Source: Mobula hypostoma (Eukaryota). From it: a stretch of 64,000 nucleotides of DNA. Of this stretch, positions 3,929 through 37,622 are shown piece by piece; position 1 is the stretch's first letter; each line of letters opens with the position of its first letter. Location of the stretch: assembly GCF_963921235.1 (NCBI RefSeq), contig NC_086109.1, forward strand, positions 2,108,001-2,172,000, in the 5' to 3' direction. The position numbers and the translations under genes are program-made. Under the pieces are notes generated by a model that saw only the letters and a program-made list of their open reading frames with translations, was not told the origin of the DNA and made no database searches.

Positions 3929-4840
3929 CTGGGGAGATAAAAGATTTTGTCATTAATCCCATCCTTACACTCCCAGTGACAAGGAATTGATGGATCCAGT
4001 CCATCCCACCACAGGGCAGAGAAAACTCCCTGTCACTGCAACACCGTGCCCCAGTCCTCTGTAGTCAGCCCCACATCACTCTGCTCCACCACCCCGCTCA
4101 CCTTGAATATCTCCATCCCCTCCAAACAGCCCCTCATCACTCCACTCCATATCGCCCCTTCTAATTGTAGTCTCCAATGTCTCTGACAGTATCCTCAATG
4201 ATGTTAGTCCAGCATCCTCACTCAGACCCTCAGTAACCCCTCTCCCCCAGCACACTCTGACTGACTGACTGCCTCTAGTATGAAACGGTGACACAGTCCT
4301 CCCACACTCACAGGACAGGAATTAGACACAGAGGCAAGATCCGTTCACACTGACCCATCACCCACTCGCAGAGCCTGAGTTAGTTGCAGGAATCTGCGCT
4401 CAGTCGGTATATGGAAAGCTGTGGAGATGGAGGGAGGTGATCTGTCTCCCTCTGACTGATGCTGGTGGGAAAGAGGGGAGGGGGTAGTAGGTGGAGATGA
4501 CAATGTTCCTTACACTCTATGATTGGTGTCTGTGGAATGAAATACTGTTGGTAGAGGCTGGAAGATCACCTGGGTGTGACCCTGAAAGAGTGAGATGGTA
4601 AAGTGCACAGCCCAGGTCAGCAGGGCCTCTCTGCATGAAGAAGATTGATTTTTATATCAGGGGCTTTTGTGAGGCCTCAACAATCCTGGGTGAAGAGGCC
4701 GCACAAAGTCAAAGACACAGCACAGGAGGGCAGGAACAGATCCCCCAACCCACACTTCCACTCCCTGCCCCACAATAATTTATCTCTTCCCCCGCTGTGC
4801 TGTTGTTACTGGATTGTACTGTGGTTGTATCTCCTAATGT

Positions 4841-5215
4841 CTGTGGACCTGATGGTCATTGCATTCTCACCACTGGTGGGACACTCCCATAGTTACATCA
4901 CTGTGGACATGGCGGACGGCTTATATTCTCTGGTGGTGGGACCCTCCCACAATTACTACTGTGGACCTGATGGACATCTCTCACCGGTGGTGGTACCATT
5001 CCATTGTTACACCACTGTGGGCCTGGGGAACAGTTCATTCTCTCTGGTGGTAGGATGTTCCCACAGTTACACCACTGTGGGCCTGGGGGACAGATCATTC
5101 TCTCTGACGTGGGACGATCTCACAGTTATACTACTGTGGACCTGGTGGACAGATCATTCTTTCTGGTGGTGGGACGTTCCCACAGTTACACCACTGTGGA
5201 CGCAATGGATACCTC
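4841..5215. repeat. ~60-bp minisatellite, about 6 diverged copies
   Basis: Recurring cccacagttacaccactgtgg(a/g)cctgg unit; ORF 4645..5229 is its translation. Confidence 0.9.
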
Positions 5216-5319
5216 GCTTTCTCCAGTGAGTGATTATCGGACACCCAGTGATATTGCAGCTTCATTCATTCATGTTTCACAGTCGCTGTTCAAACTATTA
5301 TGAAAGAGTGTGGAGAGAA

Positions 5320-5988
5320 ACTATGGTCACACCAACATGAACCTCAAAGTCTGTTTAAAGGGAATGGTTGAGATTGTTGTCTCTTTTGCAACTGTCACAG
5401 CATTGGAAATGTAGGGTTAGACCAAGCTCAGCCTGACAATCGAGTGGATTATGTTGCTTGCCATCAGGAGAACACCTGTAATTAGGACATTGTAGCCATT
5501 TGGAAGACATGATTGCAGGAGGGGCAAGACTGGCAGCTCAATATTACGGGGTTCCGTTGTTTTAGATGTGACAGAGTGGGAGGGATTAAAGGAGGAGGGC
5601 TGGCGTTACTAGTCAGAGAGAATATCACCGCAGAGCTCCATCAGGATTGACTCGAGATCTTGACTAGTGAGGCCTTATGGGCGAACTGAAAAATCAAAAA
5701 AGGATGACCATGTTAATGGGGCTAAATTACAAAATGGCCAATAGTCCGTGGGACTTAGAGGAACAAATTTATAGAGAGCTCGCAGGCTGTTGCCAGAAAC
5801 ACAAGGTTCTTGTAGTAGGTGATTTTAACTTTCCACATAATGGCTGGGAATCCCATACTGTAAAAGGACGAGATGGGATAGAGTTTGTCAAATGTGTTCA
5901 GGAAAGTTTCCTTCATCAGTGTATAGAAGTCCCAACGAGAGTTGCTGATACTTAGTCTGCTATTAGGAAATGAGACAGGGCAGATAAC
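5320..5988 (+). mobile_element. CR1 ORF2 endonuclease region, left part of an element split by the hAT insertion
   Basis: ORF 5677..5955 (VLVVGDFNFPHNGWESHTVKGRDGIEFVKCVQESFL) is an APE endonuclease; the reading resumes at 9515. Confidence 0.85.
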
Positions 5989-8900: not shown

Positions 8901-9514
8901 TGCAAATCCTAAAAGATTACATTTACTGCTATTAAGCCTACTGGTTTTGCTTAGACATTCAAGCGGTGATTACGTTGATTTTTGTATTAAATTCAATAGC
9001 CGAATTAATTGAGGTATTGCATGGTCAGAGTACGATTTGTCCAACTCCTGGTAAAGTCTTGCATCTGTTGTTTGCCTTATTTGACTTGAATAACAGTGTA
9101 TCTTTTGGCATTGCTGTCTATGTAATGCGAATAGCAGTGGATTCGTGTTGTGTTTTTCAGTTGAAAAGCAGCCATTTGACGCTGATTGCGGGATTGGTGC
9201 ATGATTCACGTTGTCCACGGTTGCTCAGATGCTCTGTTTGTTTTTTTTTTGTTTATGCTCTGTGTAGCCCGGGTTGTCTCCAATGCTGTTGACACTGTCA
9301 CAGTTCACTTCTATATCAGATCTATCGATTGCTGTTGCTTGTGAATCAACAGAGGCATTTGTAGTAGGCACATAATGCTTGAAACTGACTTTTTAACACC
9401 TCGCATCTGGCCTTGCGAATACATACTTCCATACAGTGCATCCCTCAGCACCATCACTGAATCATTCAGCCCCTCCGTAGCACCAGCAAGGAAAAACCTC
9501 TGGTACTGCCGCTG
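5989..9514 (+). mobile_element. hAT DNA transposon (ZMYM1/DUF4371-like transposase), near full length
   Basis: Imperfect TIRs caggggcagcgctagg at 5989 and (rc) cagcggcagtaccaga at 9514. 8-bp TSD cagataac (5981-5988) / cagatgac (9515-9522). Subterminal agcccc repeats. Host CR1 is continuous across the insertion. Confidence 0.92.
6446..8795 (+). pseudogene. Disrupted hAT transposase: TTF-type zinc finger, DUF4371-like region, RNase H-like core, hATC dimerisation region
   Basis: Consecutive ORF pieces 6446-8662 contain SWLEYS...AFCFACRHF, GHWEND...GNFAELL, CYDGAAVM, YIHCHAHRLNLVLVD and LSDTRW, plus a C-terminal ERSFS-like motif (CKRSFSCLR). Several stops and frameshifts, and a short deletion near 8610. 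Confidence 0.88.
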
Positions 9515-11730
9515 CAGATGACAGAAGTTTATGCAGAGGAACACTTTCTATCTAGTGACAACAATGCCATTAGTTTCAAAGTGAATATACAAAGAGGTGG
9601 TCCAATCACAAACAAGAAAAAATCTGCAGATGCTGGAAATCCAAACAACACCTACAAAATGCTAGAGGAACTTAGCTGGCCAGGCAGCATCCATGGAAAA
9701 GAGTACAGTTGACATTTCAGGCTGAGACCCTCAGGGTCGACAGTACTGTTTTCTTTAGGTGCTGCCTGACCTGTTGAGTTCCTCCCGCATTTTGCATATA
9801 ATACAAAGAGATAGGATCTGGTTTGTGAGTTGAGATCCTAAATTGGAGAAAGGCCAATTTTGATGGTATCAGAAATTATCTGGATAGTGTGGTTGGGACA
9901 GGCTATTTCTGACAAAGGTGTACTTGGAAAGTAGAAGGCCTTCAAAAATGAAATTTTGAGAATACAGAGATTTTATGTGCCTGTGAGAATAAAAGGTAAC
10001 GATAACATGTGTAGGGAACATGGGTTTTCAAGAGATCTTCAGCCCCCGTTTCAGAGATAAAAGGGGGTATATAGCAGGCATAGGCAAGTATGAACAAATG
10101 AGGTGCTTATGAAGTACAAGTAATGCAAGGGAAGACTTAAGACAGAAATTAGAAAGACTAAGAGAAGGTTTGAAGTTGCTCTAGCAGACAAGGTGAAGGA
10201 GAATCCTAAAGGATTCTACAGGTATGTTAAGAGCAAAAGGATTGCTAGGGACAACATTGGTTTGCTGGAAGACATGAATGGTAGTCCATGTGTGGAGCCA
10301 GAACAGATGGGGAGATGGGAAATGCATTCTTTGCATCTGTATTTACTCAGGGGGTGGATACAGAGTCTACAGAAGTGAGCCATAGGGGCAACTTCATGGA
10401 TCCTCCACAGATTACAGAGCAGGAGGTGTTTGCCACCCTGAGACAAATCAGCGTGGATAAATCCACAGCACCTGACAAGGTGTTCCCTCGGATCCTGTGG
10501 AAGCCAAGTGCAGAAATTTCCAGGGGCCGATCAGAGATATTTAAATCACCCTTAACTATAGGAGTGGTACCAAAGGATTGGAGGATAGCCAATGGTGTCT
10601 CACTGTTTAAAAAAGGCTCTGAGGGATCAGATATATCAGTAATTGGATAAATTTAGACTGATTAAGGATAGTCAGCAAGGCTTTGTACGTGGCAGGTCAT
10701 GTCTAATTAATCTTGTAAAGTTTTTATCGAGGAAGTTACCAAGAAAGTGGATGAAGACACAGTAGTGGATGTTGTCTACATAGATTTTAGAAAGCCATCT
10801 GACAAGGTCCCACATGGGAGTCTGGTCAAGAAGGTTCTGTTGCTTGGCATTCAGGATGAGAGAGTAAATTGGATTAGACATTGGTTTTGTGGAAGAAGCC
10901 AGAAAGTGGTAGTAGAGGGTTGCCTCTTGGACTGCAGGCCTGTAACTAGTGGTGTCCTAGTGGTGTCAATGCTGGGTCCTTCGTTGTTTGCCATCTGTAT
11001 CAATGATCTAAATAATCATGTGGATAACTAGATCAGCAAATTTGTGGATGACACAGTTTGGGGGTGTAGTGGACAGTGAGGAAAGATATCATGGATTGCA
11101 AAGTGATCTGTATCAGCTGGAAAAATGGACCCAAAAATGGCAGATGGAACTTAAGGCAGACAAGTACGAGGTTTGGCATTTCAGTAGGACCAACCAGAGC
11201 AGGCCTTACGCAGTGAATGTAGGGCACTGAGGACTGTGGTAGAACAAAGGGATCTGGGAATACAGATACATAATTCATTGAAAATGACATCACAGACAAA
11301 TGGGGTCATAAAGAAAGCTTTTGGCACATTGGCCTTCATAAGATGAGATGTTATGACGAAGTTGTATAAGACATCGGTGAGGCCTAATTTGGAGCATTGT
11401 GCGGAGTTTTGGTCACCTACCTCCAGGAAGGATGTAAACAGGGTTGAAAGAGTGAAGAAAAAATTTACAAGGCTGTTGCTGGGTTGGGAGGACCTGGGTT
11501 ATAAGGGAAGATTGAATAGATCACAACTGTTTTCTTTAGAATGTAGACAATTGGGAGGAGATTTATAAAGGTATACAAAATTATGAGGGTATAATAGGGT
11601 AAATACAAAGGCTTTTTCCACTGACGTTGGGTAGGACTCCCACCAGAGATCATTGGTTAAGGTTGAAAGGTTAGAAGTTTAAGGCAAAAATGAAGGGAAA
11701 CTTCTTCACTCAGAGGGTCACAAGATTTTG
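9515..11730 (+). mobile_element. CR1 ORF2, endonuclease end through RT to 3' region, degraded
   Basis: ORFs KENPKGFYRYVKSKR, VDVVYIDFRKPSDKVPH, KLYKTSVRPNLEHCAEFWSP. Confidence 0.88.
9610..9800. repeat. Penelope-derived palindromic repeat with a decayed hammerhead region
   Basis: aaatgctagaggaacttagctggccaggcagcatc...gctgcctgacctgttgagttcctcccgcatttt inverted arms; same family as 14930-15200 and 31875-32390. Confidence 0.7.
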
Positions 11731-11789
11731 GAATGAATCTATCAACCATAGCAAGTGCATCATCATCAGGGAAAATTTCAACTATACCC

Positions 11790-12090
11790 CCAAAGGGGGA
11801 TAGCTCCAGTCTCCATTGTGGCCAGACATCTGTGAAGAAGTTGAGGGAACTGGTCGGCTCCTTGGACTTTGTGGACATCTGGTGAAATGTTCTTCCTGAC
11901 TCAGCACCTTCACCTGGAGATCTGGAAGAGGAGCAGGGTCTGACTGACCATCTATATGTACAACAGGCACACACCTCCTGTCTCAGTGGCCTCCACCTGG
12001 CCAGTGTTGAGCTCAGACCAGAACCTGGTTTGGGTGGAGTTCAGTTCATTGCCTTTGCAAGTCAGATTCACACACTGCCACTGTAACACC
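11790..12090 (+). mobile_element. Tx1/L1-type APE endonuclease fragment
   Basis: Translates (with frameshifts) as VKKLRELVGSLDFVDIW...FTWRSG...DHLY...SSDQNLVWVEF, matching the DxWR..FTW..SRID..SDH order of these endonucleases. Confidence 0.5.
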
Positions 12091-12194
12091 TTGGGTGCGT
12101 CTGCTGTTCAGAGTTCAATTCCACCACCATTCTGTAAGGAGTCTCTGTACATCTTCTCTTGGGCTTCTGGTTTCTTCACAGAGTACAATTTTTT

Positions 12195-12640
12195 ATACTT
12201 TATACATTACCACCAGTCCCCTTTCCAAACGTCTCACACACACACCCATTAACGTCAGCCCCTTTCCAAACCTCTCACACACCTATTACCGTCAGTCCCC
12301 TTTCCAATCACCTCTCACACACACCCATTACGTCAGTCCCCTTTCCAAACCTCTCAAACACTTCCATTACGTCAGTCCCCTTTCCAAACCTCTCTCACAC
12401 ACCCATTACCATCAGTCTCCTTTCCAATCACCTCTCACACCCATTACCGTCAGTCCCCTTTCCAATCACGTCTCTCACACACACCCATTACCGTCAGTCC
12501 CCTTTCCAATCACGTCTCTCACACACACCCATTACCGTCAGTCCCCTTTCCAATCACCTGTCATATACCCATTGCTGTCAGTCCCCTTTTCAATCACCTC
12601 TCTCACGCACCCATTTCCATCAGTCCCCTCTCTGACTATT
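12195..12640. repeat. ~37-41-bp minisatellite (cagtcccctttccaatcacctctcacacacccattaccgt)n
   Basis: Directly visible, about 11 copies. Confidence 0.93.
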
Positions 12641-12825
12641 TCACACACTCCCAAAAGCAAATCCCTGGATTAGACCACACTGGGAGCACCAGGATCAGTT
12701 CTGGGCCCAGTAACACTGAGGGCACCAAACACATTTTGATGAGGGTTTCAGAGGGACCTTCTGGGAGCAGAACCAGGAGAACCTCAAAATGGTGAGCTGC
12801 CAGCTGGTGAAGCTGTAACACAGGG

Positions 12826-13148
12826 TGTTACGTACCAGCAGCAACAGATCACAAATGGAGTCAGGTTTTAATGTTAAAACCATTATCTTTATTAGTATCT
12901 ACTCAAAAATATAAGAGATTAAATGAAATAAACAGAAGTTAACAGTGTTATACGTGTGTGGCTCCCAAACTGTCAAGCTTAGGAATTGTTCTTAAAATCT
13001 TAACATGTCAAAATAGAAATGGTCCAATAACCCACGGAATAAATGATGGGAGAGATGTGTAACCAGGTTAAAATGTAGCGAGGGGGCAATCACGAAAAGT
13101 TCCACAGTTTTCACACTGGGTAAATGAAGTAACAGTCGCCGAAGATCT
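12826..13148 (-). repeat. Partial third LTR fused to a gag 5' fragment
   Basis: tgttacgtacc...gaagatct matches the left half of the other LTRs. ORF 12992..13276 repeats the gag N-terminus of 20544..20750. Confidence 0.88.
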
Positions 13149-13499
13149 AACTTCATTTCTTCCAGCTGTAACTGATCTGGTTTACTTTCAGGAAACCTTT
13201 CTAACACCTCCTCTTTAAACTCCCTTGAAGAAATATAGTACTCTGCTATTCTCCTCTGAATCTCCATCTTTTTCATAGACTATTTACCATAACAAATCCC
13301 AGCTTTTTAGCAATGGCCAACAAGTCATCCTTTTAGGCTTCCCCTAATGCCTCAGGGGTTGTCAATGCCAGAAATCCCTCAATATCCATTGCTGCTGGTT
13401 TCCAAACACAACTTAATCAAAAGGGAAGTAACCAATCAGATCAATAATCAATCAATCAGGAGGCTCCAATTTTGTTCAAATTGCGCCTGAACCCCTATC

Positions 13500-14186
13500 T
13501 TTTAAAACCACTATCTTTATTAGTATCTACTCAAAAATATAAGAGATTAAACAAAATAAACAGAAGTTAACAGTGTTATATGTGTGTGTAGCTCCCAAAC
13601 TGTCAAGCTTAGGAATAGTTCTTAAATCTTAAGATGGCAAACTAGAAAAGGTCCAATAATCCACGGAATAAATTATGGGAGAGATTTGTAACCACGTTAA
13701 AATGTAGAGAGGAGGCAATCACGAAAAGTTCCACAGTTTTCACGCTGGGTAAATGAAGTAACAGTCGCCGAAGATCTTATCAGTCGAGTCATTCCGAAAT
13801 GCTCATAGAAATATCACAAGGTGACGGTCACAGAATGTCCTTCAGCACAAGTGGTTACCACATAACACACCCGAATCCAGGTAAGGGTCAACAAAAGTGG
13901 TTGCCACAGGATACTCCGACAAAAATCCACATATGGATCACACATCCAATGTGTTGATCAACCCAATCCTTTGGGCATGGGAAAGTATCAGACTCTACCC
14001 ATTTTACAGCAAGCCCCTGTTGGCAGCTTGTGGTCCAAAGCTTCCTCGCTCTCTCTCTCCCTCTCTCTTCTTACTACTGAAAATTCCAGTGATCCATGGC
14101 AACTTGTTATACTGACATCATAGTCCCACCTGATCCTGGTGTGTTAAGGTGACACTCACAGTAAACGAAACAGTGGTCACGTAACA
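13500..14186 (-). repeat. Shared middle LTR, lacking ~50 bp at its left end
   Basis: Matches 21025-21705. A PPT (minus-strand ggtgggagg) abuts 14186; a PBS-like and leader/gag sequence lies on the other side. Confidence 0.9.
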
Positions 14187-14929
14187 CCTCCCACCAAAAA
14201 GGAGAATTTTGATCTGTAAGAGTAAAATTTTACCTGCAAACTGCAATATTTAAAACAATACATATAAGGCTACCATATAGAATACTACAGACTAATACAA
14301 CATATTGCAGAACCGTATACAAATAGTAAATTCAACTCCACTATTAAAAAAAATATATAGCAAGCTTAACATCTGGAAAGACAATCGGCCATTATATTAT
14401 CCTTGCCTTTAATGTCAGTTATCAAGAGATCATACTCCTGCAAAATCAAACTCCAATTTAACAACCTTCTAGTTTTGTTTTTCACCTTACTCAAAAACAC
14501 CAATGGATTATGATCTGTATAAACCACAAGTGGTTTCTGAGCTGGGTAAACATACACATCAAAATGCCACAATGCCAAAATAAGTGATAATAATTCCTTC
14601 TCTATTGTGGAGTAATGTATTTGATGCTCATTGAATTTCTTTGAAAGGTAAGCCACAGGATGGTCAACATCATCATAATCATCCTTCGTAGTAACACTGC
14701 TCCTGCAGCTTCATCACTGGCATCCACAGCTATGGAGAATGGCTTTGCAAAGTCAGCTGACCTGAGCACAGGTTGGTGACAGAAGATGGCTTTCAATTTA
14801 TCAAATGCCTCCTGACAAGGCTCTGTCCAAACAAACTTTTCACTCTTCTTCAGGAGGTTAGTCAATGGGAGAGCAATAACAGCAACGTTTTTACAGAACT
14901 GGCAATAATATCCAACCAGTCCCAACAAT

Positions 14930-15200
14930 CTTCCCACATCAAAGTTGCTGGTGAACACAGCAGGCCAGGCAGCATCTGTAGGAAGAGGTGACTAACTGAA
15001 GGAAGAGTGAGTAAGGGATTTGAAAGTTGGAGGGAGAGGGGGAGATCTCTTACTAGCTCTTCCTTCAATTAGTCCTGACGAAGGGTCTCGGCCTGAAACG
15101 TCGACTGCACCTCTTCCTAGAGATGCTGCCTGGCCTGCTGCGTTCACCAGCAACTTTGATGTGTGTTGCTTGAATTTCCAGCATCTGCAGAATTCCTGTT
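14930..15200 (+). repeat. Penelope-derived inverted-repeat element inserted in Gypsy pol
   Basis: Arms aaagttgctggtgaac...gcagcatct / agatgctgcc...ttcaccagcaacttt flank the hammerhead motif. Confidence 0.8.
15071..15106 (+). ncRNA. Minimal type I hammerhead ribozyme motif
   Basis: AGUC-CUGACGA-A-GGG-UCUCGG-CCU-GAAA-C-GUC/GACU: complete catalytic core, helix I AGUC:GACU, palindromic ACGU helix III, predicted cleavage after C15102. Activity not shown. Confidence 0.75.
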
Positions 15201-17862
15201 GTTTGTTGCCAACAATCTTCTGAGAGCTATTTTACCAGTTGGAATGGGAACCTCAGAAATTGCCTGAACTTTTGCCTGAACAGGAGCCAGCCTGCCCTGA
15301 CCTACAACATAACCAAGATAGGTCACAGTGGCATGGCTAAATTCACTCTTAGCTAAGTTAAGTGTACGTTTGGCCTTTGAGAGCCTGTCAAACAGCTTTT
15401 CCACTGCAGAGATATGGGTTTCCCATGTGTCATTCCCTGTGACCAAATCATCAATATAGGCATCCTTTGAATTACAGAATTAATCATTCCCTGGAATGTT
15501 CTTGGAGCATTTTTCATTCCAAATGGCAGAACATTGTATTCATACAACCCAGAAGGCATTAGAAATGCAGTAATTTTCCTACCTCTCTCCGTTCATGGAA
15601 CACACCAATATCCTTTTAACAGATCGATCTTTGTAAGAAACTTAGCCTTTCCAACCTTGTCCACACAATCATTCACTCTAGGGATGGGATAAGCACCTGT
15701 TTTTATTATAGCATTCACCTTTCTGTAATCTGTGCAAAACCTGATACTACCATCTGCTTTAGGTACCATAACACAAGCTGAGATCCAACATGAAGTAGAA
15801 TGCTTAATAATACTATTTTCTAACATATACTCAATTTCTTGTTCAGCAACTCTACATTTTTCAATATTCATGCAATATGGATGTTGTTTTATAGGTTTGG
15901 TATCCCCGACAGCTACATCATGTGAAGCTACTGTGGTTCTTTTTGGGACATTAGGGAACAAGTCCCTAAATTTCATGATCAACTGCTTCATTTGCTGCCG
16001 CTGCTGTGGTTATACATGAGCCAATTTCTCATCAAGAATTTCCAAAACAGTCAAATTCGTCAGTCTGGCAGAAATAATGTTTGGTTTAAAATAGGCCTCA
16101 GATGGATCAGCTAATAAGTTCCCAGAGAGGTTAGATTCATTGTTATTGACAACAACAGTCACAGCTTCTGTCTGTTTCTGATGATACAGCTTAAGCATGT
16201 TTATGTGACAAAGCTGCATTGGCCTTTGTCTATCTGGTGTTTTGACTACATAATCCACCACATTGACTTTAGACACAATCTCATAGGGACCATGAAACCT
16301 GGCTTGCAGAGGGTTTGTCTGGACTGGGAACAACACAAGGACTTTATCTCCTGCCTGGAATGACCTCAATTTGGCTCCCTTATCATACCAAGTTTTTATT
16401 CCTTCCTGGGCTGATTTTAAATTTTCCTTTTCTAAGTTGCAAGCCCTTTGCAATATGCCCTTGAATTTTAAAACGTAGTTTAGCAAATTAATATGCAGTT
16501 TATTGTTAATCCACTGTTCTTTTAATAAAGCCAAAGGTCCTTGGACCCGGTGCCCAAACACAAGTTCAAAGGTCCCTTACTGCAAATAAAAGCAAGTAAA
16601 CTTCCTCATCCCAATCCTTCTCATTTTCAATACAGGATGCCTTAATTGTGGTTTTGAGGGTAGAATGGAATCTTTCTAAGGCCCCTTGGGATTCTGGATG
16701 GTACGCAGACGACGCAGTTTGTTTGGCTCCCAGTTCATAAACTACCTGCTGAAATAATCCTGACATAAAATTACTTCCTTGATCAAACTGGATTTCTTTA
16801 GGCATACAAAATAAAGTGAAAAACTTTATGAGAGCCTTTGACACAGTTTGAGCTTTTATATTCCTAAGAGGTATTGCTTCTGGAAATCTAGATGCTGTAC
16901 ACATGATGGTTAACAAATACTGATGGCCAGCTTTACTCTTTGGCAATGGGCCAACACAATCCACAATAACTTTAGAAAAGGGATCACCAAATGCAGGAAT
17001 AGGCTTCAGTGGGGCCACTGGGGTAACCTGATTAGGTTTAGCCACAACCTGCCCACTATGACAAGTTCGACAAAATGTCACAACATCTTTCCTCAAACTA
17101 GGCCAGAAGAATTGTTTCAAAACCTTGTCCACAGTTTTATTCACACCTAGATGGCCACCCAAGGGCATATTATGGGGCCAAGTTAAAATCTAATTCCTAT
17201 AGACTTCAGGAACTACAACCTGGTAAACAATTGCCCGTTCCTCACTTGCAAATATATCAGGTGGTCTCCACTTCCTCATTAACACCCCATCCTTGATATA
17301 ATATCCTACTGGCACTTTCTCAACCTCATCACCTGAGAGAGCTTTTTCTCCTCAAGGTTGCAATCTCAGGGTCTCTGTTCTGTTCTGCTATAAATCCTTT
17401 CTGGACAGAGACAAATCTTTATAGTCAGACCTAATACAAGAATCTTGGTCAAACAATGAAGGCAGGAAATTCGCTGACAAGTCACCAAAATCTGAGTGCC
17501 TGTTTGGGCTATCATGAGCAGCGGAACCATGCTGCACAGGATCATCTGCATTTGCAAGTTTCTTTGCCCTAGCTCGAGTTACTGCACACGAGGGATAAAT
17601 GTTAGAATCTATCGTTGGATCATCAGTGATTGGCTTAATTGTCAGCTGCACAGCAGGGACAACTTTGCCATCAGCTAGGTCATTCCCTAACAACACAGAA
17701 ACACCTGTCACTGTAAACTGGGTCATAGTCCTATCTTAACAGGTCCTGAAACTAACTCTGACTTCAAAATTACCTTGTGCAGAGGTACAGAAACAGTGTC
17801 ACCCCCAATGCCTTGAATAAGATTTACCTCACCAGTGGCAGTCTCATCACCAAACTTTAGAA

Positions 17863-19026
17863 CGGGGTTCCCAACCTTTTAAGCACTGCGGACCGGCCAA
17901 CGGGGGGAGGAGATGGTTGCCAACGGACAAGAATAGCAGTCAAATATGTTGTGTTTACCCCGAGAAAGACTACAATGACCATGAAGCCTGGCTCGGGCAC
18001 CTGTGGGCGCATGCGTGTACGTGCCCTTTTTTTTCTACAAATCGTTTTTGGCGATTCTGTTCGTGGGGGGCGTTAATCATGATCGAAATACAGGTGATAA
18101 GTGGCTAATACACTCAATTTCATTTCTAAAAGGGTTTACCTAACAAATTTAATATTAAACACACACCGCATATTTTCCTCACATGAATATAGTGATAAGT
18201 CAATTATCAGGGGAGGACAGGGGAGCTTGAAGTAAGTGTTGAACAAACTTCCAGTAGAAGTGGTAGAGGCAGGTTCGTTATTATCATTAAAAGAAAAATT
18301 GGATAGGTATATGGACAGGAAAGGAATGGACGGTTATGGGCTGAGTGCAGGACTAGGTGAGAGTAAACGTTCGGCACGGACTAAAAGGGCCGAGATTGCT
18401 TGTTTCCGTGCTGTGATTGTTATATGGTTATATAAGTCACTTATAAGTCAATAGCATCATAACATTTCAAGTAACGTTTGGATATTAAACACACAGCACA
18501 TATTTTCCCTGTATGAACATATAAAATCATTGCAACACACCAATATCGCTAAATCAGTGGGAGCCCTGGGCTTGTTTCCCTGCAACAAGACGGTCCTATC
18601 GAGGGGTGATGGGAGACAAGGATACTCGAAGGGGGTTCCTTATGTCCAGTCTATTCCACAATTTAGTTTTTGTTACATTCATTGCAGAGATATGTTGGAA
18701 ATGGAAGCAATGTTTTCAGTGCTTTCATGGCTATCTCAGGCTATTTAGCCTTGACTTTGATCCAGAATGCCGGCAGAGACGTTATGTCAAACATATTTTT
18801 CAGCCCGCCGTCATTTGCAAGCTCGAGGAGTTGATCTCCTTCCCGCACTGACATGGATGATACGCGGGTAAGGACCTCGCATGCGTTCAAGGTCAACAGT
18901 GCGTGACAGGGAATGAGGAAAGGTGCAGCTGACTCATATCGCCAAATCAATTCGTTTCCTTGCGGCCCGGTAGCACATGCTTTGTGGCCCGGTACCGGTC
19001 CACGGCCCAGTGGTTGGGGACCGCTG
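17863..19026. mobile_element. Non-autonomous hAT (Charlie-like) element inserted in the Gypsy protease region; carries a CR1 3' fragment at ~18215-18420
   Basis: Ends cggggttcccaacc and (rc) cagcggtccccaacc. Flanks ctttagaa/gactagaa match 5 of 8. The Gypsy frame DSVL|KFGDETATG rejoins when the element is removed. Confidence 0.75.
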
Positions 19027-19986
19027 GACTAGAACACTGTCTAACAAGAGTGACTGAGAAGCCCCCGTATCTCGAAGAATTTTCACTGGTACCACGGTTG
19101 ACCCCTCATTCACTGAAGCAAACCCCACTGACACAAAAGGAATGAATTCTTTCCTAACCGGGTCAGACATCTCAGCCCCTGTCAGAGCTTCATCAGAAGG
19201 TCTGGAACTCTGTGGGTTTACAGGTGTTTCAACATATTGAACACAGGCATCTGGAACTGCCTCCTTTTCCTTCTTCTTCTTTAGGAGGAAACAGTTAGCC
19301 ATAACATGACCAGCTTTCCTGCAGTAGTGACAAATAGGACCAGAACGCCTCTCCTTTAACTGCTTCCCTTCATCCTTACCTTTGTCACTAGTCCCAGATT
19401 TAATTTCTGGTTTACCCTGACTATCCATGCTACTCTTTTGGAAGGTCTTACTCAGGGTAAATTTAAACTTGTGGGATAGAGCAAACTCATCTGACTAATT
19501 TAGCAGATTCTTGCCAAGTGGCCGCATCCTTCTCATCTAAATATGTCTTTATGTCATTATGGACGCACCTTTGAAATTCTTCAATTAAAACTAACTCTTT
19601 CAGTTTGCCGAAATCACCATCCACACTTTTAGATGTGCACAACCGTTCAAAACAAACAGACTTCTCATCAGCAAATTCCACATGAGTCTGGTTCACAGAT
19701 TTCTTCAAATTCCTAAACCTTTGCCTGTAGGCTTCTGGAACCAGCTCCTAAGCTTTAAGCACAGCCTGCTTTACTGTCTCATAATTAGCTGCATCTTCAA
19801 CTGATAGGGCAGAGTAAGCCTGCTGAGCATTACCCTTAATTACACTCTGTAACAGAAGTATTTATCAACCTCAGCCCCATCAAATGGGTGGACCAATTTA
19901 ACTTCCTTCCTAACTGGCAACAAACCTATCACCAGTGTCAAATGCTAGACCCCCCAGCAGTAGCTTCTCTGACCTCGCTAGCTCAA

Positions 19987-20552
19987 ACATAGAACATAGA
20001 ATAGTACAGCACAGTACAGGCCCTTTGGCCCACAATGTTGTGCCGACCCTCAAACCCTGCCTCTCATATAAGCCCCCACCTTAGATTCCTCCATATACTT
20101 GTCTAGTAGTCTCTTAAACTTCACTAGTGTATCTGCCTCCACCACTGACTCAGGCAGTGCATTCCACGCACCAACCACTCTCTGAGTAAAAAACCTTCCT
20201 CTAATATCCCCCTTGAACTTCCCACCCCTTACCTTAAAGCCATGTCCTCTTGTATTCAGCAGTGGTGCCCTGGGGAAGAGGCGCTGGCTATCCACTCTAT
20301 CTATTCCTGTTATTATCTTGTACACCTCTATCATGTCTCCTCTCATCCTCCTTCTCTCCAAAGAGTAAAGCCCTAGCTCCCTTAATCTCTGATCATAATG
20401 CATACTTTCTAAACCAGGCAGCAGCATGGTAAATCTCCTCTGTACCCTTTCCAATGCTTCCACATCCTTCCTATAGTGAGGTGACCAGAACTGGACACAG
20501 TACTCCAAGTGTGGCCTAACCAGAGTTTTATAGAGCTGCATCATTACAACCT
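19987..20552 (-). mobile_element. Young 5'-truncated CR1 inserted in Gypsy gag
   Basis: Intact 164-aa ORF2 C-terminus (20050..20544), tail (ctatgtt)n, nearly identical to 24677-25234. Gag EKQRR|FELAR rejoins across it. Confidence 0.95.
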
Positions 20553-20977
20553 CCTTTGTTTTTCTGCTTCCGCAGCTTCAAACTGTCTTTGTCTTTCCCT
20601 GTCCTCTAATTTAAGTCTCTCTAACTTCATTTCTTCCAGCTGTAACTGATCTGGTTTACTTTCAGGAAACCTTTCTAACACCTCCTCTTTAAACTCCCTC
20701 GAAGAAAAATAGTACTCTGCTATTCTCCTCTGAATCTCTACCTTTTTCATGAATGATTTTACCTAAACAATTCCCAGCTTTTTAACAATGGCCAACAAGT
20801 CATCCTTTTAGGCTTCCCCTAATGCCTCAGGGGTTGTCAATGCCAGAAATCCCTCAATATCCATTGCTGCTGGCTTCCACACACAAGTCAATCAAAAGGA
20901 AAGTAATCAATCAGATCGATAATCAATCAATCAATAAGCTCCAATTTTGTTCAAATTGCAGCTGAACCCCCAATTTT

Positions 20978-21705
20978 TGTTACATACCAGCAGCAATAGA
21001 TCGCAAATGGAGTCAGGTTTCAATGTTAAAACCACTATCTTTATTAGTATCTACTCAAAAATATAAGAGATTAAACAAAATAAACAGAAGTTAAAAGTGT
21101 TATATGTGTGTGTGGCTCCCAAACTGTCAAGCTTAGGAATAGTTCTTAAAGTCTTAAGATGGCAAACTAGAAAAGGTCCAATAATCCACGGAATAAATTA
21201 TGGGAGAGATTTGTAACCACGTTAAAATGTAGAGAGGAGGCAATCACGAAAAGTTCCACAGTTTTCACGCTGGGTAAATGAAGTAACAGTCACTGAAGAT
21301 CTTATCCGTCAAGTCATTCCGAAATCCTCGTTGAAATATCACAAGGTGACGGTCACAGAATGTCCTTCAGCACAAGTGGTTACCACATAACACACCCGAA
21401 TCCAGGTAAGGGTCAACAAAAGTGGTTGCCACAGGATACTCCAACAAAAATCCACATATGGATCACACATCCAATGTGTTGATCAACCCAATCCTTTGGG
21501 CATGGGAAAGTATCAGACTTTACCCATTTTACAGCCAGACCCTGCTGGCAGCTTGTGGTCCAAAGCTTCCTCGCTCTCTCTCTCTCTTCTTACTACTCAA
21601 TATCCTAGCGGTCCATCACAGCTTGTTATACTGACGTCATAGCCCCACCTCATCCAGCCTTTTTAAAGTGACACTCACAGTAAACGAAACAGTAGTCACG
21701 TAACA
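20978..21705 (-). repeat. 5' LTR (728 bp)
   Basis: tgttacatacc...cacgtaaca. A PBS-like tgggggttcagc follows on the minus strand. AATAAA on the minus strand at 21040-21045. Confidence 0.92.
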
Positions 21706-22872
21706 TGTGATGACATGTGAGCTCATTCGCAGTCTGCTGCAGGAGACAGACCTGACAGATCTCACACCCCATGGATCAGATTAAAGCTCCACAGTCCCCT
21801 TACATCTCGTCATGGACAACAGCTGATGGGAGGTGGAGTCTCTATAAACATCCCCTCCCTCACTGACGGTGCGACCCAGCGTGTGAGTGCCAGAGATAAG
21901 GCTGATCATTCACATCCATGTTCAGACAGAAGTGCTGAGTGGATGATCTCCCTCAGCTTCCTCCTGAGATCCCCCATCACAGAAACCAGTCTCCAGACAA
22001 TTCAGTTCATTCCCTGTGATAGCGGTGTACTGGATACAGCAACAGCTATGGGACCAGACCTCACCCAGGTGTGGTACTGAAGACCTGTGCCACAGAACTA
22101 TGTGGATCTCTGTGCGAGCTGTTCCTGTACAGGTACATCATTGGCATCCCCTGACAATGTGGTTTTCTCAGGTCCGGTCCTGTCCTCAACCCTGGGCTGA
22201 TCTCAGAGAGACCACCTGCTCTGAGACTTGGGGGAGCTGGACAGGAGGAAGAAGGGATAGAGGTGGATACTTCACCTTTGATGGAATCTCTGCATCCCTC
22301 AATGAAGGAGAAGGAGGTGACCTTCCTCCCAGGTGGAGGTTGCCCTGAGGTGCAGGAACCACGTGGTGGGGAAGTTGGCTCCTTCAGGGTGCCAAGGACC
22401 ACACTGTGTGGGGGGAGTTGAATACGGGAGGGTGCCGCCTTCTTCCCCTGTCATGGCCACAGTCCAAAGGAGGACACCGTCCCGAAGAGAAGGGACTGGG
22501 GAGACTCCCGGGATACAAACCCCTCTGTAGATCAGGGTGATGCAACCATGATTCTTTTGCAAGGAGACCACTCTTTTCATCTCCATCGACGACGGCAATT
22601 ATCTTATCGTCTGGGGGAATTTCAGCTCCACCACTGGGGTACACAGTGGCCGCTGTGTGTACCTGTCAATGTCACTGCAGATACTCAGACAGGCTACTCC
22701 AACAAACCCTCCCAAACTCTCCACCTCTACCCCCAAGAATGAATGTCTTGGACACGGACAATCAGGCAGTGGGGTTCAGTAAAGAGTGGAATGGCCAGGA
22801 TCTCCCGTCACCCATTAATTAGGATGTTTCAGGAACTGGTAAAACCCAGGCCCCTCGCTGTGTCTCACTCAC

Positions 22873-23175
22873 CGTTCACTTCCAGTCGCACTCTCGCCTT
22901 AAGTTCAGCTCCAGAACCCACAGCAATTTCCACATCATAATCACCGGCATCCTCTCTCTGTAGATCACGGATTTCCAGACTGAAGTCCCCAGGATGAAGA
23001 GCTATCCGTCGCTTGTACTCCTCAGGACCGAAGCAGGAAATGTTTCCACTTCTGTATTCGGCTTTTCTGGTTCCTTTTGAGCTCCACACCACCTGAGAAA
23101 CGCCCGGCCCGACATTGATCCCAGCAGGTAAGGCGACCGTCTCTCCCCGAGCTCCTTTCACAGTCACCATCCATT
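22873..23175 (-). CDS. Gene A Ig V-set exon 3, CD2/SLAM/CEACAM-N-like, no B-F disulfide
   Basis: Acceptor cttttctcctcag|AA, donor AACG|gtgagt; 303 nt, phase 1-1. Motifs VVW, RIALHPGDFSLEIRDLQREDAGDYDV. Confidence 0.9.
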
Positions 23176-23439
23176 CTGAGGAGAAAAGAGGAGGCAGTCA
23201 GCAGGTGAGCTCCGTGACTGGAGCAGGAATCAGAGTGAGGGGGGTGTTGGGAGGGTGTTTCCCCCTCTTGTGGGATCTAGAACAAGGGCACAGTTTTAGA
23301 ATAAGAGACCATAATTTCTGAGAGAGATGAGGAATGATTTCCCCTCTCCAAGGATCAGGAACCTATGGAATTTTCTCCCCCAGAGAGGTGCTGAGTCACT
23401 GTATTCAAAGCTGAGAGGGATATAGTTCTGAGGGTAGTG

Positions 23440-23815
23440 ATACCTTTAAACATCATTACCTGGCATCTGTATGCTGGAATTGCATGGGTTAAATTGAGAG
23501 TGTTTACTGGGAATTAGATATCACTACATCTTGGTAATGACATGTTTCTGTGGACCCAGCTTGGGTTTTATTTACTGGTTCTCTAATGCATTTTAATCTG
23601 ATGAGCGGTCGGGGATGGGGGGGTTGTTGCTCGCCACCGCTTACACGCTGGAAGGGGGAGCTGGAGGGGGGGGGATCTTAGCGGTTCTCACATTTAACTG
23701 TCGTTCATTCTTTGGGGCACTTTGTTTTTGTGGATGTTTTGCGAAGAAAAGGAATTTCAGGATGTATATTGTATACATTTCTCTGTCATTAAATTGAAAC
23801 TCTGAACCTTTGAAA
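23440..23815 (+). repeat. Non-LTR retroelement 3' end; a related copy is inverted at ~52860-53120
   Basis: Shared text ...ttctttggggcact...ttcaggatgtatatt...tacatttctctg(t/a)cattaaat. Absent from the paralogous intron near 27520-27560. Confidence 0.6.
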
Positions 23816-23949
23816 GACGCAGGGAAGTGGAGCTGAGATCAGGGTCAGACCAACCCCGAATTCAGTGAGCGGGGAGTCGGCTTGAGGTGGGTGAAAGGCC
23901 ACTCACTGTTCCTTGGATAGAAATACAGATGGGAGGGTTAGGATGTTTG

Positions 23950-25234
23950 TAGATGAGATAAGGGCAGATCGTGTCTAACAATCCTGTAGATGAGGGCAGA
24001 TCATGTCTAACAAGCCTGATAGAGTTCTTTGAGGAGGTGACCAGGCATATAGATGAGGGTAGTGCAGTGGATGTGATCTATATGGATTTTAGTAAGGCAT
24101 TTGACAAGGTTCCACACGGTAGGCTTATTCAGAAAGTTAGAAGGCATGGGATCCAGGGAAGTTTGGCCAGGTGGATTCAGAATTGGCTTGCCTGCAGAAG
24201 GCAGAGGGTGGTGGTGGAGGGAGTACATTCAGATTGGAGGGTTGTGACTAGTGGTGTCCCACAAGGTTCAGTTCTGGGACCTCCACTTTTCATGATTTTT
24301 ATTAACGATCTGGATGTCGGGGTAGAAGGGTGGGTTGGCAAGTTTGCAGACGACACAAAGGTTGGTGGTGTTGTAGATAGTGTAGAGGATTGTCAACGAC
24401 TGCAGAGAGACATTGATAGGATGCAGAAGTGGGCTGAGAAGTGGCAGATGGAGTTCAACCCGGAGAAGTGTGAGGTGGTACACTTTGGAAGGACAAACTC
24501 CAAGGCAGAGTACAAAGTAAATGGCAGGATACTTGATAGTGTGGAGGAGCAAAGGGATCTCGGGGTACATGTCCACAGATCCCTGAAAGTTGCCTCACAG
24601 GTGGATAGGGTAGTTAAGAAAGCTTATGGGGTGTTAGCTTTCATAAGTTGAGGGATAGAGTTTAAGAGTCGCGATGTAATGATGCAGCTCTATAAAACTC
24701 TGGTTAGGCCACACTTGGAGTATTGTGTCCATTTCTAGTCACCTCACTATAGGAAGGATGTGGAAGCATTGGAAAGGGTACAGAGGAGATTTACCAGGAT
24801 GCTGCCTGGTTTAGAGAGTATGCATTATGATCAGAGATTAAGGGAGCTAGGGCTTTACTCTTTGGAGAGAAGGAGGATGAGAGGAGACATGATAGAGGTG
24901 TACAAGATAATAAGAGGAATAGATAGAGTGGATAGCCAGCACCTCTTCCCCAGGGCACCACTGCTCAATACAAGAGGACATGGCTTTAAGGTAAGGCGTG
25001 GGAAGTTCAAGGGGGATATTAGAGGAAGGTTTTTTACTCAGAGAGTGGTTGGTGCGTGGAATGCACTGCCTGAGTCAGTGGTGGAGGCAGATACACTCGT
25101 GAAGTTTAAGAGACTACTAGACAGGTATATGGAGGAATCTAAGGTGGGGGCTTATATGGGGGGCAGGGTTTGAGGGTCGGCACAACATTGTGGGCCGAAG
25201 GACCTGTACTGTGCTGTACTATTCTATGTTCTAT
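23950..25234 (+). mobile_element. Young 5'-truncated CR1, RT to 3' tail
   Basis: ORFs 23971..24651 (YMDFSKAFDKVPH, PQGSVLGP, KFADDTK) and 24760..25173, separated by two point stops; tail ctattctatgttctat. Confidence 0.95.
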
Positions 25235-25659
25235 AAAGATTGATGGTGCAGAGAATAGATGCAACTGGACATGGATCAGATGCAGACATGGGTGGGGAAA
25301 CGTGGCTGCATGTTGATCAGGGGGGTAAAGAAGGGACTTTACATGCTTGTCCTCATCAGTCGAGGCACTGAGTTCAAAAGTCCAGAAGTTATGCTACATC
25401 TTTAAAAACTCTGATTGAGCGACATCTGGAGTGTTGCATTCATTTCCAGCCACCGCGTTAAAGGAACAACGTGGAGGCTTTGGAGAGGGAACAGACATTT
25501 ACCATCTGGGTGCCTGGACTACAGGGCATGTGCTGGAAGAAAAAGTTGGAGAAATTTTGGTTGTTTCCTCACAGTGTTGGAGGTTGAGGATAGACCTGAT
25601 ACAAGTGTTTAACATTTATAAGAACACAGATAAAGTAGACAGCCAGTATTCTTTCCCCA

Positions 25660-25950
25660 AGGGTTGTACTATAGCGTAGTGGTTAGCACAACACTTTACA
25701 GTACCAGTGAACCAGGTTGAATTCCCGCTACCCGTAAGGAGTTTGTACATTCTCCCCGTGTCCACGTGGGATTCCTCTGCGTGCTCTGGTTTCCTCCCAC
25801 AGTCCAAAGACGTACCGATTGGATGGTTAATTGGTCATTATAAATTATCCTGTGATTAGGCTGGGTTACAACCGGGGGATTGCTGGGCAATGTGGTTCAA
25901 ATCCCAGAAGGGACTATTCCCTGCTGTATCTCAATAAAATATAAAAAAAC
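25660..25950 (+). mobile_element. tRNA-derived V-SINE (HE1-like)
   Basis: A-box-like gtagtggttagc, B-box-like gttgaattccc, conserved gtgctctggtttcctcccacagtccaaagac core, A-rich tail. Confidence 0.75.
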
Positions 25951-26987
25951 AAATGAAATTGTCTAACACCAGAGATGGTGTATTTACAGTGAAGATGATC
26001 AAAAATTCAAAGGAGATGTGTGGGGCAAATTTGTCTTTACACACAGAGTGGTGGGAGACTGAAATGGGCTGCCGGGAGTGGTGATAGAGGCAAAGGCCAG
26101 AGAGATTTTTGAGAGGCTGTCACATACACACATGAATGTGTAGAGAATAAAGGCATATGGAGCACGAACAGTCAGAAGGGATTAGCTTAACTGGGTTCCA
26201 TTAGCAATGAGTTTGGCAGCACATCATGAGCTGAGGAACTGTTCCTGTGATGTTCCATTCCCCACGTTCTGACGTTCTCCTCCCTCCAATGGAACCCGTT
26301 AAATCTGGGGTGGAGGAGATTTCTCAGACAAACGTTGCTGAGTGAGATTATTGTGAATGTGATATTACTGTTGGAGTGAGTCAGGAACCATATTGGTGTG
26401 TGTGAGTGTGCTGCTGTGTCCGTGTACTGTGTCACTCACTGGGACACTATATTCAGTGTAATGAACACACAGGGTCTCACTCAGCACAGCACAGCATGAA
26501 GGCTGAGGAATAAACACCTTGCTGAGCTCAGACCTCAGTCTGGAGAATTACCAAGCAGTGCCTTCTGAAAATGGGATCCCTGAACATGAAAGACCAGGTC
26601 TTTGACCTGGGGATACGGAGGGATCTGTTGAAAAGACCCACAGATATAGACTGTTCGACCCAGTCATCAGCCCCTCCCACCAGATTGGCCTATCTCCTGT
26701 TCCCCCACACCACCTGCTCATCTCCTCCAACCTCGGAGTCACGAGGTTCCCCATTGACAGTTCGATGCTTCACAGCCTCTGGTCCAGTCTCCGGGGATGT
26801 GGTGAGTGTGTCCTCCAGACTCACACTGTCTCAACCCCACTACACTGGGACCGTGAGCCCAGCTCTGGACACGGACAGTCAGTGGGGTTTAGAAAACAGG
26901 GGAACACACAGGATCTGCCTTCACCCATTAATTGGAAGTGTTAGAGGAACCAAAGAAACCTGGGCCCCTCTGCAATGCTTCACTCAC

Positions 26988-27290
26988 CGTACACCTCCAG
27001 TCGCATTTTGTTCTGAGTCTGTGTTCCTGAACTTGCTGTAACAGCCACCTCATAATAACCAATGTCCTTTATCTGTAGATCACGGATTTCCAGACTGAAG
27101 GTCCCAGGATGAAGAGTTATCCGTCGCTTGTACTCCTCAGGACCGAAGTAAGAAATGACTCCATTTGGATATTCTGCTATTGTGGTTCCATCTCTTCTCC
27201 ACACCACCTGAGAAACGTCCAGCCCACGTGTGATCCCAGCAGGTAGGGAGACCAACTGTCCCCAAGCTCTTGTCACGGTCCCCATCCACT
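26988..27290 (-). CDS. Gene A Ig V-set exon 2 (chimeric V3/V1 type)
   Basis: Acceptor cttgtctcctcag|AG, donor TACG|gtgagt; 303 nt, phase 1-1; open frame; DLQIKDIGYYEV. Confidence 0.9.
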
Positions 27291-27969
27291 CTGAGGAGAC
27301 AAGAGGAGGCAGTCAGCCGGTGAGTTCAGTGACTGGAGCAGGAATCGGGGATGTTTCCCCCTCCTGTATGATCTAAAACGAGGGCACAGTTTCAGAATAA
27401 GGGACCATAATTTCAGACAGATATGAGGAAGGATTTCTCTTATCTAAGGTTCAGGAATCGATGGAATTTTCTTCCCCAGAGAGTTGTGGAGGCTGAGTCA
27501 CTGTATTCAAGGTTCAGTCAGAGTTTTGATCTGGAGAGGATTTGGGGAGAGGGTGGAAACAGGCAGGAAAGTAGAGCTGAGATCAGGGTCAGACCAACCC
27601 TGATTTCAGTGAGTGGGGAATAGGCTCTAGATGGGCCAAAGGCCTCCAACAGACTGTCGGTGTTGTGGATGGTGCAGAGGAGCGCCAATAGATGCAATTG
27701 GACATGGATCAGATGCAGACATGGGTGGGGAAACGTGGCTGCATGTTGATCGGGTGCCCAAGAGGGTCTTTACATGCATGTCTTCATCAGTCGAGGCACT
27801 GTGTTCAGAAGTCAGGAAGTTATGCTACATCTTTAAAAACTCTGATCAAGCTACATCTGGAGTATTCCATTGGACTAATTTGGGCTGTTTCCTCTGAGTG
27901 TCAGAGCTGATACAAGCTTATGACATTTATAAGGACACAGATGAAGTAGACAGATAGTATTTTTTTCCC

Positions 27970-28262
27970 AGGGGTGGCACGAATGGGTAGTCCTTAGCAC
28001 AACACTTTACAGTACCAGTGAACCAGACTGAATTCCCGCTGCCCGTAAGGAGTTTGTACATTCTCCCCGTGTCCACGTGGATTCCCCTGTGTGCTCTGGT
28101 TTCCTCCCACAGTCCAAGGACATACCAATTGCATGGTTAATTGGTCATTATAAATTGTCCTGTGATTAGGCTGGGTTACAATTGGGGGATTGCTGGGCAG
28201 TGTGGTTCAAATCCCGGAAGGGACTATTCCCTTCTGTATCTCGATAAAATTTTTAAAAAAAT
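27970..28262 (+). mobile_element. Second HE1-like SINE copy, duplicated together with its intron
   Basis: Same SINE with the same flanks as 25660-25950. Confidence 0.75.
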
Positions 28263-29091
28263 CAAATAAGAGGAGTCCAATACCAGAGATTGTGCATTTA
28301 CAGTGACAGGGGTAAATTCAAAGGAGATGTGTGGGGCAAGATTTTCTTTACACACAGAGTGGTGGGAGCCTGAAATGGGCTGCCGGGAGTGGTGGTAGAG
28401 GCAAAGCAAACCCATTAAACCTGGGGTGGAGGAGATTTCTCCGGCAGACGCTGCTGAGTGAGATTATTGTGAATGTGATATTACTGTGAGAATGAGTCAG
28501 GAACCATATTGCTGTGTGTGAGTGTACTGTTGTGTCTGTGTACTGTGTCACTCACTGGGACACTATATTCAGTGCAATGAACACACAGGGTCTCACTCAG
28601 CACAGCACAGCATGAAGGCTGAGGAATAAACACCTTGCTGAGCTCAGACCTCAGTCTGGGCAATTACCAAGCAGTGCCTCTGAAAATGGGATCCCTGAAC
28701 ATGACAGACCAGGCCTTTGACCTGGGGATACAGAGGGATCTGTTTAACTGACCAACAGATATAGACCGTTCAGCCCATCCACAAGTCCCTTCCACCATAT
28801 TAGCCTATCTCCCGTTCCCTGTTCCCCATCTGCTCATCTCCTCCAACCTCGGAGTCACGAGGTTCCCCATTGACAGTTTGATGCTTCACAGCCTCTGGTC
28901 CAGTCTCCGGGGATGTGGTGAGTGTGTCCTCCAGACTCACACTGACTCAACCTCACTACACTGGGACCGTGAGCCCAGCTCTGGACACGGGCACTCAGTG
29001 GGGTTCAGTAAACAGGGGAACACACAGGATCATTAATTGGGGTGCTTCAGGAACTGATGAAACCCGGGCCCCTCCGCAGCATCTCACTCAC

Positions 29092-29412
29092 CGTACACAT
29101 CCAGTCGCATTTTGTTCTGAATCTGTGCTCCTGAACTTGCTGTGACAGTCACCTCATAATCACCAGTGTCCTCTCTCTGCAGATCACGGATTTCCAGACT
29201 GAAGTTCCCGGGATGAAGAGTTATCCGTCGCTTGTACTCCTCAGATCCGTAATAGTCACTGATCTTGTTTGAATATGACACTATCTTCATCCTGGGTGAC
29301 AACCGTCTCCACACAAGCTCAACAACGTCCGGTCCGACTGGGATCCCAGGATGTAAGGAGACCGACTGTCCCCGTGTTCCATTCACAGTGGTCGGGGAAT
29401 CCCCAGTCCCAG
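29092..29412 (-). CDS. Gene A Ig V-set exon 1 (N-terminal domain)
   Basis: Acceptor ctcttgtctcctcag|CT, donor TACG|gtgagt; 321 nt, phase 1-1; GTGDSPTTVNGTRGQSVSL...LVW...DLQREDTGDYEV...RLDVY. Confidence 0.9.
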
Positions 29413-37570: not shown

Positions 37571-37622
37571 CCACACGGGCGACCCAGGCGGCAACACATA
37601 GCAGGGACGAGACCATCCACAT
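37571..37622 (-). CDS. Gene A signal-peptide exon MWMVSSLLCVAAWVARV(A)
   Basis: ATG at 37622 with A at -3; 52 nt ending in phase 1 at GTGG|gtaagg; joins V1 in frame (VAGTGDS); CpG-rich context. Confidence 0.8.

Follow-up and report, generated by a model that had tools for sequence, protein, structure and literature searches.

A V3/V1 hybrid exon in a three-V SLAM/CD2-like receptor gene of rays and its probable origin in one out-of-register exchange

The gene and its three V exons

The stretch analysed here, 64,000 nucleotides of Mobula hypostoma contig NC_086109.1 (positions 2,108,001 to 2,172,000 of the forward strand, assembly GCF_963921235.1; called the window below, with position 1 as its first letter), carries on its minus strand a SLAM-like gene with three V exons, V1, V2 and V3, of which the middle one pairs with V3 along its 5' part and with V1 along its 3' part. 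The last coding exon of the gene falls beyond the window. The elements on which the analysis draws are the following:

37571-37622, minus strand: leader (signal peptide) exon, with ATG at 37622 and phase-1 donor GTAAGG, located by tblastn with homologue leaders and by reading of the sequence
29412-29092, minus strand: V1 exon of 321 nt, coding for a V-set domain that lacks the canonical disulfide; its 3' part represents the parental type of the V2 3' part
27291-29091, minus strand: intron V1-V2 (I12), copy 1 of a duplicated ancestral intron, with a SINE-like repeat inside
27290-26988, minus strand: V2 exon, 303 nt
27077-27290, minus strand: V3-derived 5' part of V2 (strands A to E and the conserved block)
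27064-27076, minus strand: best-supported breakpoint interval in V2 (maximum chi-square and likelihood profile)
26988-27063, minus strand: V1-derived 3' part of V2 (F-G hairpin)
23176-26987, minus strand: intron V2-V3 (I23), copy 2 of the ancestral intron, with later insertions inside
23175-22873, minus strand: V3 exon, 303 nt; its 5' part represents the parental type of the V2 5' part
3743-3928, minus strand: exon for the transmembrane (TM) and juxtamembrane parts of this gene's product, with a phase-1 acceptor

Each of the three V exons is bounded by an AG acceptor and a GTGAGT donor, has phase 1-1, and translates as an open V-set domain (Pfam V-set E-values 1.9e-10 to 1.1e-05). Their coordinates, lengths and splice sites are those of the original prediction, which had been made from the sequence alone, and no V exon besides these three was found in the 64-kb window. 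When leader, V1, V2 and V3 are spliced as predicted, the product has 100% identity to residues 1-326 of P0164, a protein of 409 aa listed as 'uncharacterized protein LOC134355361 [Mobula hypostoma]'. The splicing partners rest on exon-limited read depth, on one contig ending at an acceptor, and on this identical predicted protein. Three runs are probably RNA, a status guessed by the tool; two come from the source organism, the third from a close relative. In these the bins of V2 reach depths of ca. 100-2150 and the intron bins beside it 0-13, whereas a DNA run has coverage in every bin, exon and intron alike. One 311-nt contig matches 27119-27290 without mismatch and departs from the genome exactly at the acceptor at 27290. 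Contigs with V1 variants also align on the V2 3' part, as expected from the 90% identity of these two parts.

The mosaic exon and the duplicated introns

The three-way exon alignment holds 80 informative sites, that is, positions where V2 agrees with only one of its neighbours. Left of alignment column 233, V2 pairs with V3 at 38 of 54 such sites and with V1 at 16; right of column 245 it pairs with V1 at 24 of 26 sites and with V3 at 2. The division into a V3-like 5' half and a V1-like 3' half, as first read from the sequence, is thus upheld, and a breakpoint test on this alignment returned a single switch of V2's nearest relative, with a maximum chi-square of 27.6 that was reached by none of 20,000 site-order shuffles. 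The best breakpoint lies at 27076-27064 (support interval of 2 log-likelihood units, 27141-27039), where the conserved EEYKRRI..FSLEIRDLQ block has its 3' edge. Within this block the synonymous distance (dS) of V2 is 0 to V3 and 0.14 to V1, which places the switch at the block's 3' edge. The breakpoint had been put inside the shared EEYKRRI.LHPG.FSLEIRDLQ block at ca. 27075-27150; the homology block stands, and the position is refined to its edge. Beyond it, the V2 3' part has 90% identity to V1 and 63% to V3. The 16 minority sites on the left fit changes on the V3 branch: for example, the A and D of RRIALHPGD in V3 are T and N or E in stingray V3 domains.

The joint itself is in frame, with neither filler nor loss, and V2 is gap-free against V3 over its 303 nt. 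The longest runs of perfect identity between V1 and V3 measure 25 nt (V2 27101-27077) and 23 nt (27140-27118); both fall in the block and adjoin the breakpoint. A seamless in-frame joint abutted by such runs argues for an exchange guided by homology. Unusual synonymous-site conservation of the block between V1 and V3 was considered and rejected: synonymous differences occur in 2 of 20 codons of the block versus 5 of 16 in its flanks, which is not significant (Fisher p = 0.20), and protein constraint is therefore enough to explain why homology survived there.

The introns on either side of V2 are copies of each other. Self-comparison with blastn pairs I12 27291-27510 with I23 23176-23408, 27556-27644 with 23812-23900, 27668-27871 with 25242-25440, 27903-28406 with 25592-26095, and 28409-29091 with 26293-26987. 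When V1-I12-V2 is aligned globally with V2-I23-V3, collinearity of the introns extends over their full length, at ca. 90% identity. The original prediction had matched the intron upstream of V2 to that upstream of V3, and the one downstream of V2 to that downstream of V1; in our self-comparison the former blocks were recovered nearly exactly where they had been placed, the last pair above confirms the latter match, and the V1-V2 and V2-V3 introns proved to be collinear homologues.

These flanks bear directly on the proposal that no recombination took place, V2 being a plain copy of one neighbour and uneven rates (a fast 5' half of V1, a fast 3' half of V3) mimicking a mosaic. Evolution of the N-terminal part is indeed fast (nonsynonymous distance, dN, 0.277), but rate heterogeneity is contradicted by the introns: the one upstream of V2 follows the one upstream of V3 in collinear blocks over all 1.1 kb of 27291-28406, and the one downstream of V2 follows that of V1 for ca. 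700 nt, whereas the upstream flank of V1 shares just ca. 56 nt and the downstream flank of V3 ca. 124 nt. We consider this alternative highly improbable. Even less credence, close to none, goes to an assembly artefact in which a segment was falsely duplicated or mis-joined. Mis-assembly is common in tandem repeats, but here the copies are set apart by ca. 10% divergence and several insertions, both introns have DNA contigs of a second organism in every bin, V2 is overlain by probable RNA contigs, and independently assembled genomes of three other ray species code for the same three-domain protein.

The array from V1 to V3 is of the form a1 [b I a] [b I a] b3, in which the repeat unit consists of the V1 3' part, the intron and the V3 5' part. 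Along it, identity between V1-5' and V2-5' runs at 68-73% and climbs to ca. 90% at V1 29194 / V2 27090; through the intron the two units are 77-98% identical; V2-5' and V3-5' are then 78-86% identical, and identity drops to 68% from V2 27083 / V3 22968. The step up and the step down at the two repeat ends therefore coincide at one place in V2. The outer comparisons, V1-5'/V2-5' and V2-3'/V3-3', give 63-73% identity overall. In Kimura two-parameter (K2P) distances, these unduplicated outer halves stand at 0.34 and 0.52, far above the repeat unit, where the whole intron gives 0.112 (0.093-0.133), its 5' part 0.095 (0.073-0.121) and its 3' part 0.125 (0.099-0.153), both with indel edges masked, and the V1-3'/V2-3' exon part 0.112. 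The intervals of these parts overlap; windows of 50 nt are over-dispersed, and the remaining exon part, V2-5'/V3-5', stands at 0.197 (0.133-0.271). The three V exons also share homologous flanks, ca. 56 nt long on the upstream side and 124 nt on the downstream side.

I23 has extra insertions, at ca. 23409-23811, 23901-25241, 25441-25591 and 26096-26292. The largest (23901-25241) holds a reverse-transcriptase fragment of a long interspersed element (LINE), with a Pfam RVT_1 match for 23971-24651 and 97% identity to an inverted copy at 20000-20548. As it is present in one intron only, it came later than the duplication. By contrast, a high-copy repeat resembling a short interspersed element (SINE), with very high contig depth in all runs, occupies the same place in both introns (ca. 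27935-28334 in I12 and ca. 25680-26030 in I23), and so was inserted before the duplication.

Origin of the hybrid and its history in rays

V2 is a V3/V1 hybrid that most probably arose from one out-of-register exchange between ancestral V1-type and V3-type exons. The ancestral gene would have possessed two diverged V exons, one of either type, with one intron between them. Copies of that gene, once misaligned, would have exchanged strands within the ca. 70-80 nt that were nearly identical in both exons (the EEYKRRITLHPG.FSLEIRDLQ block), leaving a product with the order V1, intron copy, hybrid exon, second intron copy, V3. The hybrid exon would have taken strands A-E from the V3 type and the F-G hairpin from the V1 type and, with its 303 nt and phase 1-1, would have added one complete V domain in frame. 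The exchange would have preceded both the divergence of manta/devil rays from whiptail stingrays and the duplication of the gene in its cluster; thereafter the A-C'' part of V2 and V3 would have changed amino acids faster than the intron gathered substitutions. Of the earlier proposal of unequal crossing-over between V1 and V3, the out-of-register exchange fits the repeat anatomy, while crossing-over as such is not separable from its relatives: meiotic unequal crossing-over, sister-chromatid exchange and template switching at short homology would all fit the data. The hybrid domain added in frame, the other part of that proposal, is found in the predicted protein, where V2 contributes its 303 nt in phase 1-1.

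Several observations weigh against this explanation. The V2-5'/V3-5' distance (K2P 0.197) exceeds that of the intron (0.112), so that a single event requires accelerated evolution of the exon. Perfect identity at the junction today extends over just 25 nt, which is little for classical homologous crossing-over. Divergence in the intron is over-dispersed (variance among 50-nt windows 12.4 versus a binomial expectation of 4.6), which makes later patches of gene conversion, or alignment problems, likely. Finally, the RNA status of the runs is only a guess of the tool, and the V1-V2 and V2-V3 joints are not among the matches listed, in which transposon-derived contigs dominate. A date for the exchange from the intron K2P was rejected, given the over-dispersion and possible conversion.

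Conversion is also central to a history in two steps, in which the whole V1 exon and its intron were duplicated with breakpoints outside the exon, and a conversion tract from V3 later overran the 5' part of the middle exon and ended in the conserved block. The patchy identity of the intron (from 0-1 to 11-13 differences per 50 nt) speaks for it, conversion having seemingly been active, as does the homology that the three exons share in their flanks (ca. 56 nt upstream, 124 nt downstream), which offers other exchange sites. But it calls for two events where a single one would do, and the identity steps of both repeat ends meet at the same position in V2. Moreover, after a late conversion V2-5' and V3-5' should lie closer together than the two introns do, and the opposite is observed (0.197 versus 0.112). 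We rate this two-step history as quite unlikely and infer that V2 has a single-event history.

Over codons 1-50, V2 and V3 differ by a dN of 0.277 (0.168-0.413) and a dS of 0.214, and dN lies above the upper bound of the intron distance (0.133) in 99.5% of bootstraps. The A-C'' part thus seems to have changed its amino acids at an accelerated rate, with the caveat that conversion may have lowered the intron distance. The part that forms half of the usual binding face would then have changed fast after the duplication.

The same chimera is found elsewhere. Protein sequences of Mobula hypostoma, M. birostris, Hemitrygon akajei and Hypanus sabinus were compared, and the three-V architecture occurs in M. 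birostris (P0163), in H. akajei (P0001, P0156, P0158), in H. sabinus (P0157, P0159), and in a neighbouring Mobula hypostoma gene, P0161 (LOC134355365). In trees of the N-part, which precedes the block, all second domains (d2) form one group that stands beside the third domains (d3) and apart from the first (d1); in trees of the C-part, which follows it, the d2 domains join d1 and the d3 domains form a clade of their own. Identities over the N-part are 33/49 and 33/50 for orthologous pairs versus 30/49 for V2 and V3 of the window. Orthologous pairs being slightly closer, the exchange would predate the split between Mobulidae and Dasyatidae and at least one gene duplication. From these protein comparisons the chimera appears ancient, fixed and common to several rays, not a recent or polymorphic allele. 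The matches in sawfish and skate cover about half of the query, with two V domains of the ordinary type, and the chimera may have originated within Myliobatiformes.

Paralogues with two, three and four V domains exist, and these are not alleles of the present locus. In the same Mobula cluster, P0165 has two V domains; P0160 has four, two of V1 type and two of V2 type; and in P0162 the second and third domains are nearly identical, with one residue differing. These counts point to repeated gain and loss of V exons, although some may be annotation artefacts. A more far-reaching idea is that recombination in the SLAM-like V exons of rays recurs at the conserved D-E block, which would act as a joint and let the F-G hairpin be swapped or homogenised independently of the A-C'' part. 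There are hints in this direction: in Pristis the C-parts, which count 28 residues only, cluster by species, whereas P0003 d2 retains its domain type in the N-part, and further V-exon duplications occur in the paralogues P0160 and P0162. If true, such a joint would mix the two halves of the GFCC'C'' face across a cluster of genes with two to four V domains; we think it unlikely.

Receptor architecture, known parallels and the surrounding cluster

Judged by its sequence, P0164 would be a receptor of SLAM/CD2 type in which three V domains occur without a C2 domain or an immunoreceptor tyrosine-based switch motif (ITSM). V1 just passes the Pfam Receptor_2B4 model (21.5 bits versus a cut-off of 21), and the source names of the relatives read Ly-9-like, SLAM family member 5/8/9-like or CD48-like. 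There are no cysteines in V1 or V2 and one non-canonical cysteine in V3, hence no canonical B-F disulfide. P0164 and its orthologues run from V3 directly to the membrane without a membrane-proximal C2-set domain, and neither a C2-like exon nor a remnant of one was found in the introns or the rest of the 64-kb window (all E > 0.25). The ITSM (TxYxxV/I) defines the signalling SLAM members, CD48 and SLAMF8/9 being without it; it is absent from the cytoplasmic tail of P0164, and paralogues P0017, P0020 and P0023 carry motifs of the type TxYxx[VI/A].

A structure model of V2, built with 42 homologous domains, gives an intact and complete V-type sandwich (predicted local distance difference test, pLDDT, 93.5), whose best Foldseek matches by TM-score and root-mean-square deviation are CD48, CD84, 2B4, CD2 and NTB-A (TM 0.80-0.87). 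In this model the breakpoint falls in the E-F loop, with strands A, B, C, C', C'', D and E of V3-type origin and the F-G hairpin of V1-type origin. The binding face in solved CD2/SLAM structures is the GFCC'C'' sheet, and the hybrid V2 would accordingly join its two parents on this face. An effect on ligand binding, or on the diversity of ligand faces, is plausible.

The proposed mechanism is a classical one, with what would be an exact analogue in the haemoglobin anti-Lepore chromosomes, which carry delta, a beta-delta hybrid, and beta. There, as proposed for the ray gene, unequal homologous exchange between diverged tandem paralogues kept both parents with the hybrid between them, and the hybrid, like V2, has its 5' part from the downstream parent and its 3' part from the upstream one. 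The anti-Lepore units are whole genes, however, and the hybrid is a separate gene, whereas the ray units are exons of one gene and yield an extra protein domain. The haptoglobin Hp2 allele, an intragenic duplication of exons 3-4, resembles the ray gene in adding domain copies in frame by intragenic tandem duplication; it differs in having intronic breakpoints and no chimeric exon, and it is a human polymorphism, whereas the ray chimera appears fixed in several genera. Hybrid immune-receptor genes produced by non-allelic homologous recombination are found in KIR, LILR and FCGR2C. These too are Ig-superfamily receptors of tandem clusters in which unequal exchange has reshuffled the domain content, but they usually join whole exons or domains of different genes, whereas the ray joint lies within one V exon, in the E-F loop. 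A further parallel is Ly9/SLAMF3 (V-C2-V-C2). It shares with the other CD2/SLAM family receptors and the ray gene a V domain without intradomain disulfide and, like the ray gene, has raised its domain number by internal duplication; yet Ly9 duplicated whole V-C2 modules, whereas in the ray gene three V domains follow one another, with neither C2 nor ITSM. We know of no chimeric domain in Ly9.

Exon and domain duplication is common in immune receptor clusters, and the present case opens no new mechanism and answers no long-standing question. What appears to be new is the gene family, a SLAM-like subfamily in myliobatiform rays with three V domains and no C2, together with the position of the joint inside an exon and the long retention of the hybrid; in the library searched, nothing relevant turned up for SLAM family genes of elasmobranchs or rays. 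The locus would offer a very clean natural case of an immune receptor gaining a domain through one misaligned exchange within an exon. The result is a new V domain, predicted to be fully folded, with two sheets' worth of strands from different parents, and this hybrid seems to have been long kept and then, in myliobatiform rays, spread by gene duplication. The locus is also an example of an unusual SLAM/CD2-like architecture.

The gene lies in a cluster of relatives, the Mobula LOC numbers 134355361-134355367 being consecutive. A second, neighbouring SLAM-like gene is represented in the window by its 3' exons at 61165-61471 and 53269-53322, minus strand. Its TM exon (61471-61319) matches residues 325-375 of P0161 with 100% identity, P0161 being itself of the V1-V2-V3 type, and a second, weaker TM-like match of this gene occurs at 61266-61165. 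A C-rich minisatellite (53396-61050) separates the TM exon from the last coding exon (53322-53269) and is therefore probably intronic; it extends over 7.6 kb with ca. 265 copies of a 30-nt unit (60-nt higher order), 73-75% matches, a GC content of ca. 64% and a GC skew of ca. -0.86.

In the three-V gene itself the intron from V3 to the TM exon (window 3929-22872) is ca. 19 kb long and full of mobile elements. These include the pol region of a long terminal repeat (LTR) retrotransposon with its integrase at 16566-17168, a series of hAT-like open reading frames (ORFs) at ca. 6400-8700, and the LINE fragment at 20000-20548. At 12095-12673 of the window, ORFs of repeated short peptide units (…SPLSKPL.HTH…) mark a tandem repeat, and a strong skew in strand composition is seen around it, at 10-14 kb.

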